Of a DNA stretch of 15,465 nucleotides, positions 5,797-12,619 are shown piece by piece. The notes beneath the pieces were generated by a model. The model was not told the DNA's origin and searched no databases. It saw nothing but the letters and a program-made list of their open reading frames with translations. Position numbers and translations under genes: made by a program. The stretch lies in sequence record NC_001338.1; one strand, given 5' to 3'. The number at the start of each line of letters is the position of its first letter. Position 1 is the stretch's first letter.

Positions 5797-6099
5797 ATGG
5801 TTTCACCCCAAACCCGAAAAGAAGAAGAGTTATTAGAAAAACAAAATTCAGTTTTTTATTTGTTAACTTTAGGAAGGAAACCGTATGGTTCATATTTGCA
5901 TATAAAAATTGAACTAGACGAAGATGAAAAATTAGAGAAGGAAATCTATGCGGATAACATTAAGCTAGAGAATGAATTAAGACAACTGAAGAGGTTGTAT
6001 GAAGTATATCAGAGCGTAGAGATTGACGATGCTCAGAAAGCAATACAGAAGGAAGCATTACTGACGATAGCGAAAATACTAAGTGTTTTTGACTTCTGA
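5797..6099 (+). CDS. a100: A100, unknown function
   Basis: First ORF after the T6 promoter; charged helical protein. Confidence 0.88.
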
Positions 6100-6100
6100 G

Positions 6101-6518
6101 GAGGCTGAGGGGCAATGAAGGCTGAGGAAACAATCGTGGAACAGATTCAGGACATAATTCAAAAACTTCGCTATTATACAGGAAGATCAAATAGACATTT
6201 CAAGATGATTAGAAACTATTATGAGGAGTGTATAATAATAGTAGACGCTGAGGAGTTTATACAAGAAAATAACACTCTAAGCATTACTGTATATTCTGAG
6301 GATCTTATATATTATACTGTTGATATCCCGCTGAATTTCATTAAACATGTATTCGTATCCGCTTCGATTGATCAGCTCAATGATCAGCTTCAGCTAAAAT
6401 ATAATGAGGGTCTGATTAGAGTTTCTCTTACTTTGAACGATGACTTATGTGAGAAACTGAGAAGCTCATACTGCGGTGATATTACATTCTTTAATGAGGC
6501 TGAGGGGCAATGAAGGCT
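6101..6518 (+). repeat. 23-bp perfect direct repeat (gaggctgaggggcaatgaaggct) at 6101-6123 and 6496-6518
   Basis: Read directly; each copy holds an SD-like motif and the codons M-K-A. Confidence 0.95.
6115..6513 (+). CDS. a132: A132, unknown function
   Basis: SD-like gaggggc; ATGA overlap with c80. Confidence 0.85.
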
Positions 6519-6752
6519 AGGGTTGAATACATCAAATTACCTAGATGTTACACAAAAACTTATAGAAAAATCGAAGCGAAAAAGAACAACGACGGTACAA
6601 TAGAATTAACGTTAGAGGAAACAATGCAAGTAATATCCTTTAAACTACCCCCGGCGTTAAATGCAAAACTAGAACAAATTGCGATCAAAGAAAAGAAAAG
6701 CAAGAGTGAAATTATTCGAATAGCGTTAGCGAGGTATGTAGAAAATGTTTAG
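6510..6752 (+). CDS. c80: C80, C-terminal ribbon-helix-helix protein
   Basis: [33 protein letters not shown]. Confidence 0.92.
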
Positions 6753-7817: not shown

Positions 7818-7851
7818 CTCTTTTTAAAGTCTACCTTCTTTTTCGCTTACA
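7818..7851 (+). promoter_or_regulatory. T3 promoter (leaderless a291) overlapping the upstream terminator
   Basis: tttttaaa 7821-7828, ~25 nt before ATG 7852; T-run ~7839-7843. Confidence 0.85.
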
Positions 7852-8727
7852 ATGAGGAAGTCCCTTCTAGCCCTACTAACCCTATCCCTAGCGTTACTAT
7901 CGTTTTTAATAACACCATCGATGGCATTGAATTCTGGCGGTTCACCGATACCGATATATTATAACTATTATAACTACTATAGCCTTAACGCAGAAGGGTT
8001 TGGATTCAGTTTCAATAATAGCAATAATTGGGTTGAAACGAACTTTATCTCAATAACCATAAACTTACCTAGTTCATTACCAAATAACTATCAAATCAAT
8101 AATGCCTATTCTATCGTAGTAGGATTATCACCATATCCGGTTAGCAATATAAACATTTTTAATAGCCCATTAGAAGCATATGTTGAACTATTCTCAAACC
8201 CACCGAATACATATCCAAATGAAATAGGATTTGTAGTTAGTTACGGCTCAACTGTATTTTATAGTTATACCACACTGTATAGCAGTTTTGCGGGCACACA
8301 ACTAACAATAACTATATCATATACCGGAAATGGGTTTGGTGTGCAATTCTCTGACAGTAACGGGTTCTCTCACTCAGTTTCGGTAAGTTCGGTAAACTTT
8401 GTACCATATGGTGCTCTAATACTCGGATCACTAATCCCGAACGGGAACTATTACTACTACCCAGTAGGTAACATGTTACCGAATGCATCGGTGAACTTCT
8501 CATATACGATCTCAAGTTTCACAATAGAAGGAAACCCGGCCACATCCGTCGATATTACCACACTTGGATTAGAAGGAAACACTGCAATATATACTTCAAG
8601 TAGCAATTGGTTCAAATGGGTATCCGGTAGTGTGGTTATCACAAATGCCGTTGCCTATACCTATACCGATTTGGCTAGAATAGGAGGAAGTGCACAAATA
8701 AACTATACTGCATCGCAGCTATATTAA
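7852..8727 (+). CDS. a291: A291, predicted secreted glycoprotein
   Basis: Signal-peptide-like MRKSLLALLTLSLALLSFLITPSMA; N/S/T/Y-rich; sequons NNS, NAS, NFS, NYT; no C-terminal anchor. Confidence 0.92.
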   Translation: MRKSLLALLTLSLALLSFLITPSMALNSGGSPIPIYYNYYNYYSLNAEGFGFSFNNSNNWVETNFISITINLPSSLPNNYQINNAYSIVVGLSPYPVSNINIFNSPLEAYVELFSNPPNTYPNEIGFVVSYGSTVFYSYTTLYSSFAGTQLTITISYTGNGFGVQFSDSNGFSHSVSVSSVNFVPYGALILGSLIPNGNYYYYPVGNMLPNASVNFSYTISSFTIEGNPATSVDITTLGLEGNTAIYTSSSNWFKWVSGSVVITNAVAYTYTDLARIGGSAQINYTASQLY

Positions 8728-8734
8728 GCAAAAT

Positions 8735-8752
8735 CTTTTTTTACCTCTTTTT
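8735..8752 (+). terminator. Oligo-T terminator after a291
   Basis: ctttttttacctcttttt. Confidence 0.75.
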
Positions 8753-9173: not shown

Positions 9174-11552
9174 ATGAAGTGGGGACTATTATTCTTAATA
9201 ATGTTTATATCCATTTTTTCCCTCAACTCTTTAGCCCTATTAATCGGCGGAGGAGGGCCCAACAATAATGGTGCGGGAGTTTACACTCAGACTATAACAG
9301 TTAACGGAGGAACCGTACGAACTACTCTTAACGGTTCAACGCTTTCTACCGCACCATGGCTCAACCCCTCTTACGTAAGCGTCTACAACACATACTACCT
9401 TCAGGTTTTGCCGAACCAAGAGTATATTGACAACAACGTTTCGTTATCCCTAAATACGGCTAACATTGCGTTAAACGTCACTTGGTTATTGGCGTCCTCA
9501 AGCAATACGGGATCCTACGGTGCAATCGCCATAGGCTACGGAGTGAACTTTCCCGCGGGGTTTGTCAATAACTACGGTCCTTCCGCACCTTACACGCCGG
9601 ACGGAATCGTAATATATCTCATGAAAGGAGGCATGCCGACCTATCGTTTATTCGTATACTTCAATGGAGTTGAGCAGTTAAACGTTTCAGTCGGGTCAAT
9701 CAGTGTGGGACAAAAAATAGGTTTAGGGTTCTTTTATCTACAGAACACACTTTACGTTTACTACTATAACGGTACTTTAAAGACTTGGTCATTAACGCCC
9801 GGTACGCTGATTACTATAAATAGTAATTACGTTATAGACGCACAGAATATAGGGCCGGGCTACGGCTACGGTCAATGGGTAATAGTTAATTATCAATATG
9901 CGATGCCGGTTACTGCACAACTGACGGTTAGTTATTTCGCATTAGGGTACAATGTATATCATTTCTTAATGGCTTATGCGGGTGCTGGAAACCCGGTAAA
10001 CATAACTGCGAATAACGGGGCTTCTTACAGTATAACGGGTATAGTTGCAGAGAAGAACTTTACGATAACGGGAATTCAGCAAGGCCTAGCCTATGCTTTC
10101 AGCTTGTTAGGGAAACCGAATGGCTTATACTTATTATATATGGGGCCAATTGAGGGCAGCCCACCAACGTGGTATGTAAACGTAACCGTAGGGCTTCAGA
10201 TCGTTACACCCCAGAAAACGATAAACTACAACTTAACAATACCAGTAATCGTTGAGGGCTATGCGTTATACCCTTCTGTTAACGTACCTTCCGGAACTTA
10301 CCTAAGCGGACAGACTATTAGCTTTACCCTCTCATCGTTCTTGGGATACCCTTCAGGCTTAGGCTATTACACCGCAGTAAATCTAATCGCAAACGTAACA
10401 ATAAACGGTGTGAGTCATGCTATCCCCTATAGTTTCACCCCGATAGTGCAAACCCCGATAACTTATTACTACACTGTTATAGTGGATGAAGGACAATTTG
10501 CATTAATAGATTATCAAGGGAGTTTCACAGTCCTACCCGCACAGAGTCAGCCCGTGATATTCATTACTTCTTATCCTAGAATTGGGCTATTAGGACAAAC
10601 GATAACTGTGACTTTCCAGTTCACTTATAATAGTCCCGTAGCGAATGTAACTCAATCAGCGTTTACGCAATCATCTAATATTCTCGCTTTTGCCTATGCG
10701 AAAATGGTAACAACAAACGCTATAGTTCAGTTCAAGGCGTATTGGCTAAGTGCTAATGACGGGTTGGTGATTATAACTCAAACGAATAACTATCTAATTC
10801 CGTTTAATAGCAGTATAACGGGCTTAAACTTCGCAAACAATAGTGTTAATACGTTAACGTTTCAGATTGTAACGGGTAACTATGTACAAATAACTAGCTC
10901 AGCGGGAGGCGTGCTTACCCTAAGCAATACTAGTCCGATTATAGGAATAGGGTTCTATTACGGTTCCGGTGTCCTACACCTGAACTGGTTCTTCGTTAGC
11001 GGTATCATTTTGCAGTCTGCAACGGCAAATCAGGCTTACGTTATTTTGACGGGGACTAACCCAAATACGCTTTCACAGTATACGACGGGCTATACTAACG
11101 CTTCGGGGTTCGGTACTGTAACGCTGAAGTTGAGTTACACTCCTTACGAACTTGTGGATGTAGACTGGTACGGCGTTACATACGCTTTGTTAAACATTAG
11201 CGTTTCAAACACTACTACAGTAAGCAGTACTACGACCGTGAACACAACAACGCTTAACTATAACTACACTAAGCCTTTCAGCAATAACATAGCACCTAAC
11301 AGTCAGCTTTATGACTTCTCAGCGTATCAGCCGTGGGCGGAAATTATCGGGATTGTGGTCGTGGTCGTCATAGCTCTGCTGGGCTGGAAGTTCGGCGGGT
11401 CTGCGGGAGCTTCGGGTGGTGCGGTTATGGGGTTAATCGCAGTCAGCTACTTAGGTTTACTGCCTTGGTACCTATTCTACATCTTCGTATTCGGTATCGC
11501 TCTATTACTTGCTAAAGTATTTGTAGACCGTTTCATGGGGAGGGAGGAATGA
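9174..11552 (+). CDS. vp4 (c792): C792 / VP4, tail (adsorption) glycoprotein
   Basis: Signal peptide; beta-rich T/N/G/Y ectodomain with ~19 N-x-S/T sequons by my count; Thr-rich stalk; three C-terminal hydrophobic helices. Confidence 0.95.
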
Positions 11553-11785
11553 CGGACGCAATCAGTTTAGCCTTGCAAACGGGCTTAGGGCCGGTGGTAG
11601 GGGTAATTATCATACTGGCAATGATGGGGCTAACGTATAAGATAGCGGGAAAGATCCCGGCAATCATAACGGGAATAGCCTCGGCTTTCGTCCTAATGTT
11701 TATGGATTTTTTACCGTTATTTTGGGGTATCGCAATAATCTTCGGGTTAATCGCGGGTATGGTGGTGACAAGGGATGGGGACTAA
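11549..11785 (+). CDS. b78: B78, three-helix membrane protein
   Basis: ATGA-coupled to vp4; almost entirely hydrophobic. Confidence 0.9.
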
Positions 11786-12275
11786 GTTAGTCGTTTACGT
11801 CTTATTGTTTGACGTCTTCCTATCGTTAGTGGTAGGTGCCTACTCGGGTATAGCACCGCCAAGTATTCCACCGGTACCTACATATGCTTCAGCCCAACTC
11901 ACGGCAAGTCTAATCACATGGACAGTGGGATGGCCTCCTATTACATTATGGCCTCAGATAACGCTTATTCCGCCGTTTTCGATTTTGGGTGCAAACTTCC
12001 CCGGCTTAACCATTCCTAGCTTAACGATACCCGGTGTAACGCTCTTCTCAATAAGCTTCAGCTGGTTAGCCCCAATTATTTATATTGCAAATTGGATCAT
12101 TTGGGTCTTTCAGACTGTTGCTAGTGTGCTATCTTATTTACTTAATATCTTTACGGGTTCGGTAGGTCTATTGAGTAGTGTACCCGTCTTAGGGCCATTT
12201 TTGACCGCCTTCGTGTTGATAGTTAACTTCGTGTTAGTGTGGGAATTAATCAAGTTAATTAGGGGGTCGGAATGA
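11775..12275 (+). CDS. c166: C166, Pro-rich membrane protein, probable minor virion protein
   Basis: N- and C-terminal hydrophobic helices around a Pro/Ile/Thr-rich repeat segment. Confidence 0.9.
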   Translation: MGTKLVVYVLLFDVFLSLVVGAYSGIAPPSIPPVPTYASAQLTASLITWTVGWPPITLWPQITLIPPFSILGANFPGLTIPSLTIPGVTLFSISFSWLAPIIYIANWIIWVFQTVASVLSYLLNIFTGSVGLLSSVPVLGPFLTAFVLIVNFVLVWELIKLIRGSE

Positions 12276-12619
12276 CGGAGTATAACGCAAACAGTATAAG
12301 GGCTAAGATACTGAGGCGTAAAATCCTTCAACTGATTGCGGAAAACTACGTTTTGTCAGCGTCGTTAATCTCTCACACACTCTTACTCTCATACGCCACA
12401 GTGCTTAGGCACTTGCGTATCCTTAACGATGAGGGCTATATCGAATTGTATAAGCAAGGTAGGACGCTATACGCAAAAATCCGCGATAATGCGAAACAAA
12501 TTCAGATTCTGAATTCAGAACTGGAGGGGTTTAAAAACGTAAGCGGGAAGCCGATATTGACCAAGGATGAGACTCCTAAGGAGTTTGGCAAGAAAGATAG
12601 CCTCACTCAAAGAGGCTAA
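12272..12619 (+). CDS. b115: B115, ArsR-like winged-helix regulator
   Basis: [37 protein letters not shown]. Confidence 0.92.
12507..12560 (+). promoter_or_regulatory. Capsid-gene (T1/T2) promoter inside b115
   Basis: tttaaaaa 12530-12537; upstream 14-bp palindrome ttctgaattcagaa 12507-12520. Confidence 0.75.

Follow-up and report, generated by a model that had tools for sequence, protein, structure and literature searches.

Gene a132 of SSV1 lies between two identical copies of a short sequence that contains an SD-like motif and a start codon. This arrangement raises the question of whether a132 can be removed from its operon in a single precise step and, if so, whether such junctions serve as a general route of gene gain and loss in fuselloviruses. 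The window analysed here is the complete SSV1 genome (X07234; record NC_001338.1, 15,465 nt). The repeat, GAGGCTGAGGGGCAATGAAGGCT, is an exact 23-bp direct repeat with copies at 6101–6123 and 6496–6518, which are identical at 23 of 23 positions, have the same orientation and are spaced by 395 nt from start to start. Its left edge is set by a G/T mismatch (6100 versus 6495) and its right edge by a G/A mismatch (6124 versus 6519). About 4×10−6 exact 23-mer pairs are expected by chance in 15.5 kb, and the longest exact repeat in 300 first-order Markov simulated genomes was 12–18 nt and never reached 23. The preliminary description had noticed this repeat with its SD and start codon on both sides of a132, and the analysis confirmed that it is exact and much longer than chance would produce. 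GenBank had already recorded it: in X07234 both copies have carried the label 'direct repeat 2' (as repeat_region) since the original record, which also marks repeat 1, within the T6 promoter, and repeat 3, within vp1/vp3.

Upstream of a132 lies a100 (5797–6099, plus strand), which opens the rightward early transcript and is a soft-core fusellovirus gene of the DUF5517 family (Pfam PF17639, E=5e-66). Its TGA stop is located 1 nt ahead of the upstream repeat copy (6101–6123, plus strand), in which an SD-like GAGG/TGAGG, a 4-nt spacer and ATG-AAG-GCT form the start of a132. The gene a132 (6115–6513, plus strand) encodes 132 aa and is an orphan known only from SSV1. The downstream copy (6496–6518, plus strand) contains the native SD and start of c80 and, in another frame, the end of a132. 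The c80 gene (6510–6752, plus strand) is also soft-core and encodes a ribbon-helix-helix (CopG-like) regulator (RHH_1, E=2e-9; PHROG 7325). As had been proposed, A132 and C80 start alike, both with M-K-A and with the ATG at offset 14 of their repeat copies. Residues 1–3 of A132 are encoded by the upstream copy, residues 128–132 (EAEGQ) and the stop by the downstream copy, and the a132 TGA overlaps the c80 ATG (ATGA). The DNA specific to a132 (6124–6495, plus strand) comprises 372 nt, exactly 124 codons, without a start or stop codon of its own and with a GC content of 0.33, as in a100 and c80. What is unusual is that the repeat is a translation-initiation region, so that the orphan owes its start as well as its stop to the neighbouring c80.

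Seven aligned C80 homologues all begin with MKA(R/K)VEYI, and the invariant MKA argues that the repeat is c80's own initiation region. Repeat 2 is therefore the native a100–c80 junction (SD, spacer and codons 1–3 of c80), and the junction would be present twice because a132 sits inside it. Alternatively, two strong ribosome-binding sites could have been kept alike by selection or have come to resemble each other by chance. Each copy acts as an initiation region, most internal SSV1 genes have GAGG/GGTGA motifs ahead of them, and a 10-nt version of the repeat is found at e51/f93, all of which would fit such convergence. However, the identity covers 23 of 23 positions, including the spacer and synonymous sites that vary among c80 homologues (AAG/AAA, GCT/GCA), and the other start contexts have no more than 13 nt in common, a length of 23 being absent from the simulations as well. 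When the start-codon contexts of SSV1 were compared pairwise (528 pairs), the longest common word was mostly 4–7 nt, and the values next to 23 were 13 and 11. We regard convergence or chance as extremely improbable; the statistics effectively refute it.

The 10-mer GAGGCTGAGG has three copies in the genome versus 0.01 expected. The copy outside repeat 2 is the one that had been pointed out as a shorter version at the e51/f93 junction, and it is indeed there on the minus strand (3884–3875), within the last codons of e51 (…EAEE*) and upstream of the SD and ATG of f93, 12 nt ahead of the latter. This partial copy is most likely a common purine-rich motif of the SD type and not a recombination partner. 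Within the a132 region, the 9-mer AGGCTGAGG occurs three times (6102–6110, 6119–6127 and 6497–6505), and codons 2–5 of a132 (AAG GCT GAG GAA), 17 nt further on, echo the repeat's 5' part. At its left edge the insert thus resembles an incomplete third copy, which may have been left behind when the junction was duplicated.

We next compared the interval between the a100 and c80 homologues in other fuselloviruses. The slot is empty in SSV9/K1, MK054210 and UViG_643692045 (IMG/VR), where the c80 homologue follows 12 nt after the a100 homologue; besides SSV9/K1, the set comprises two Kamchatka viruses. The empty junction reads TGAGGTTGAGGAGGAATGAAGGC(T/A)AGGGTTGAG, also GAGGTTGAGGAGGAATGAAGGC(T/A), and is present as a single copy only, which matches the SSV1 repeat at 20 of 23 positions in MK054210 and at 19 of 23 in SSV9/K1. 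The expected empty site with one junction copy in relatives without a132 was thus found in three of them. Elsewhere the slot is occupied by a gene of the ORF49 family (SSV4, SSV5, SSV7 and MK054219), a gene of the 88a family (SSV2), the three genes C48, B87 and B92 (SSV6), C117 and C59 (SSV10) or an ORF of 67 aa (one IMG/VR record). Its content therefore ranges from none to three genes, from at least five unrelated families, and none of the slot genes of the other fuselloviruses is related to A132.

The idea that different genes would be found between the same repeat did not hold in these relatives, whose boundaries are different short motifs: the slot genes elsewhere are bounded by short stop/SD/start motifs (GGTGA, 5–7 nt, ATG). 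Start-registered exact repeats of at least 10 bp were absent from the early regions of ten other fuselloviruses. SSV1 has two of them, repeat 2 itself and a word of 11 bp shared by the starts of b78 and b115. Searches of IMG/VR and JGI metagenome contigs with the 23-mer gave no match, and neither did host genome contigs searched with C80 and with the integrase. Among these genomes, the a100–c80 slot is a hot spot, yet its long junction duplication is a peculiarity of SSV1.

Further repeats were also seen. The 11-bp start-registered repeat GGAATGACGGA (11546–11556 and 12269–12279) lies at the starts of b78 and b115, which both begin with M-T-E/D, and it brackets the core genes b78 and c166; their deletion would probably be lethal. 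SSV9/K1 carries a 40-bp exact direct repeat (1606–1645 and 1815–1854, 209 bp apart) upstream of its early genes and, besides it, a 24-bp repeat.

The main new result concerns SSV1 itself. The preliminary description had predicted that a single crossover would take out 395 bp, with c80 staying intact after a100 and keeping the same initiation signal. Logan contigs were retrieved by exact look-up of the C80 and A100 proteins, and 13 contigs encoded both. The gene a132 was present in eight of the 13 and absent from five, and a third state at a100–c80 was not seen among them. The five contigs without a132 come from at least three runs and are 99.8–100% identical to SSV1; those examined include SRR33004431_9 (10,324 bp), SRR33004427_274260 and SRR32197633_253. 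Exactly 395 bp are missing and one repeat copy remains, so that the contigs read ...TTGACTTCTGAGGAGGCTGAGGGGCAATGAAGGCTAGGGTTGAA... with the junction a100-TGAGGAGGCTGAGGGGCAATGAAGGCTAGGGTTGAA-c80; the predicted product is present as the exact sequence in all five. An identical C80 of 80 aa is encoded, and the SD, spacing and start of c80 are unchanged; c80 now begins at the distance from the a100 stop, 15 nt, that a132 had. The a132-bearing contigs from 2019 runs are 100% identical to X07234. In another a132-bearing contig, ERR15077694_320, 27 nt are inserted at the 3' end of f112 (4624), giving a product of 121 aa versus 112. What is new here is that public data contain exactly the product expected of the deletion.

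Collapse of the repeat during assembly was considered as a source of these contigs and rejected. The contigs are unbranched across the junction, and their ends lie 30 nt into the 61-bp repeat 3, which fits an assembly word of 31. A repeat of 23 bp is shorter than this deduced word and should not be collapsible by the assembler.

The contigs without a132 carry further changes, which bear on their origin. A second deletion of 383 bp (7827–8209) with a 2-nt microhomology (TA) takes part of T3 box A (7823–7828), the T3 start (7851) and the first ~119 codons of a291. The length lost from the a291 region is not a multiple of 3. This loss is clearly a derived deletion, by which the first third of the a291 toxin gene and its promoter are gone. 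In c792 (vp4), the 12-nt unit GTGGTATGTAAA (10157–10168), single in the reference, has one or two extra copies in the variants; these gains are in-frame and give a VP4 of 796 aa (one) or 800 aa (two), by which the lineage is split in two sub-lineages. The variant VP4, a tail/attachment protein, also carries V371M plus S678L or S547R. There is an extra T at 8736, in the T-run 8730–8736 of the terminator region downstream of a291. Compared with the reference, the lineage shows about eight substitutions per 10 kb, mostly non-synonymous, and its specific markers are the extra T at 8736, G9413A, V371M and the 12-nt duplication. The e178 gene is intact in the contigs without a132. Antisense RNAs have been described opposite a132 (T6E, 6115–6513) and opposite a291 (T3E, 7852–8727) (bioRxiv 10.64898/2026.06.17.732947). 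They face the two genes deleted in the variant lineage, which may be a coincidence.

These additional changes also bear on whether the contigs could derive from an engineered SSV1 mutant from which the a132 ORF was precisely removed. Deletions of SSV1 ORFs by long inverse PCR are routine (PMC13431529; PMC9608457), and an ATG-to-ATG deletion of a132 would leave an identical junction. The a291 deletion, however, is not ORF-precise (383 bp, 2-nt microhomology, loss of the T3 promoter), unlike the published a291 deletions, which are in-frame (PMC13431529). Extra substitutions and variation in repeat number between runs likewise speak against a construct. Finally, the intact e178 is at odds with the shuttle backbones of the pMJ03 type or EAI283, which have insertions there. 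We therefore judge a laboratory construct very unlikely.

A more serious alternative is that the contigs represent a sister SSV1 lineage that never had a132, in which case the repeat would be a scar left by a recent insertion and not a site of ongoing excision. Such a footprint could arise, for example, by integration of a small circle through crossover in the junction or by a template switch. An a100 that adjoins c80 in distant relatives is the likely ancestral state; the contigs have substitutions of their own and are not simply the reference minus 395 bp; and copies that are 100% identical fit a recent event. On the other hand, a second clear deletion is present in the same lineage, SSV1 is known to lose DNA between repeats, the insert has a GC content like that of its neighbours, and the 23-mer was not found in IMG/VR or JGI metagenome contigs. 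A donor of A132 was absent from 5.8 billion clustered and 1.84 billion representative proteins. We consider this alternative rather unlikely.

The searches behind the last point returned A132 itself and no relative, whether by tblastn against 50,697 phage records, by a word search of 5.8 billion clusters or by a full phmmer scan of 1.84 billion representative proteins. Matches in Pfam and PHROGs were sub-threshold, the ESM Atlas held no kin, and A132 had no similarity to the other slot proteins or to the six frames of SSV1. This agrees with a 2022 minireview that places A132 among seven SSV1 singletons (PMC9608457). The single-sequence AlphaFold2 model of A132 is moderately confident (pLDDT 67, pTM 0.66); it shows one helix at each terminus and a beta sheet, and its repeat-encoded tail is disordered. 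Against the PDB, the model gave nothing better than E=0.1, with only weak rows of the HSP20/CS-like beta-sandwich type. Judging from the model, A132 is probably a real folded protein. It would provide a concrete example of an orphan gene expressed within an operon by means of a duplicated copy of its neighbour's initiation signals.

We return to loss by recombination, which is the most economical and most likely reading of the genomes without a132. The upstream copy supplies the SD and M-K-A of a132, and the downstream copy its last five codons and TGA. With two identical copies that point the same way, recombination would remove a132 together with one of them, and it could proceed as homologous recombination, single-strand annealing or replication slippage. 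The product would be a100–junction–c80, an arrangement like that of SSV9 in which the translation signals of c80 are unchanged. Recombination between direct repeats is already an established mechanism in SSV1. At the 61-bp repeat of vp1/vp3, 286 bp are deleted in ~10–20% of long reads, as confirmed by PCR on genomic DNA (bioRxiv 10.64898/2026.06.17.732947), and transposon insertions in SSV1 vp3 are excised in the same way (PMC6080066). In the long-read transcriptome preprint, gaps were seen at vp1/vp3 only (bioRxiv 10.64898/2026.06.17.732947), so the loss of a132 was probably rare in that stock. We infer that the genomes without a132 arose by deletion between the repeats and that the event is spontaneous and recurrent. 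As to its arrival, the single copy in SSV9-like viruses suggests that a132 would first have entered by an insertion that duplicated the junction. Taken as a whole, it seems likely to us that repeat 2 is a doubled a100–c80 junction around a132 and that a132 can be lost by recombination between the copies.

The occurrence of near-identical genomes without a132 in circulation suggests that the gene is dispensable. SSV1 without a132 and with a disabled a291 would also offer a ready-made natural a291-null mutant. SSV1 is the model archaeal virus, and stocks merit a check at repeat 2 in addition to repeat 3.

Whether the junction stands for something more general is a separate matter. The preliminary description had seen in it a way of gaining or losing genes through shared initiation sequences. 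The variable slot and the exact loss product partly support this for the site itself, but a general route of gene shuffling was not supported. A stronger version would hold that junction duplication is a recurrent way for fuselloviruses to plug into, or remove from, an operon DNA that has neither start nor stop, with a132 captured or created as a gene that would use the SD/start of c80 and ATGA. We find this distinctly unlikely. If it were true, homology at the junction would let co-infecting viruses swap accessory genes without polar effects.

Among known systems, one that compares is the mosaicism of tailed phages. The modular-exchange model of Susskind and Botstein and comparisons of lambdoid phages reportedly describe short conserved boundary sequences between mosaic genes. 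In both cases, homology at a junction would allow the gain or loss of non-homologous genes with the operon undisturbed, the slot genes differ from relative to relative, and at a100–c80 a variable slot was found between conserved flanking genes. The fuselloviruses differ in that no common long boundary sequence surrounds the alternative slot genes: the same boundary around different genes was not found in SSV2, 4, 5, 6 or 7, in MK054219 or in one IMG/VR record.

The a132 arrangement also resembles a target-site duplication or an integron cassette, in that a promoterless gene lies between direct repeats and precise loss is possible, although 23 bp would be long for a target-site duplication. A transposon was rejected as an explanation, as A132 matches no transposase family and the insert lacks terminal inverted repeats, the longest inverted match of its ends being 4 nt. 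An integron-type or integrase-driven cassette was likewise rejected, the repeat having a self-complementarity of no more than 2 nt and no dyad symmetry; with the 44-bp SSV1 att site (1735–1778), it has no more than 5 nt in common.

The closest counterpart is repeat 3 of the same genome. Both are exact direct repeats a few hundred base pairs apart around a dispensable gene, and in both, one copy is left after the deletion and the reading frame stays intact. They differ in that repeat 3 consists of 61 bp within two paralogous coding sequences, whereas repeat 2 is a 23-bp initiation region. The deletion at repeat 3 is seen by PCR on DNA and in ~10–20% of long reads, and that at repeat 2 so far only as fixed variants in public assemblies. 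Of the features expected of deletion between direct repeats, identical flanking repeats and genomes that show the exact loss and one remaining copy were found for a132. We conclude that SSV1 has, besides vp3, another gene of this kind, a132, which is bounded by repeats and can be lost; the case is real but ordinary.
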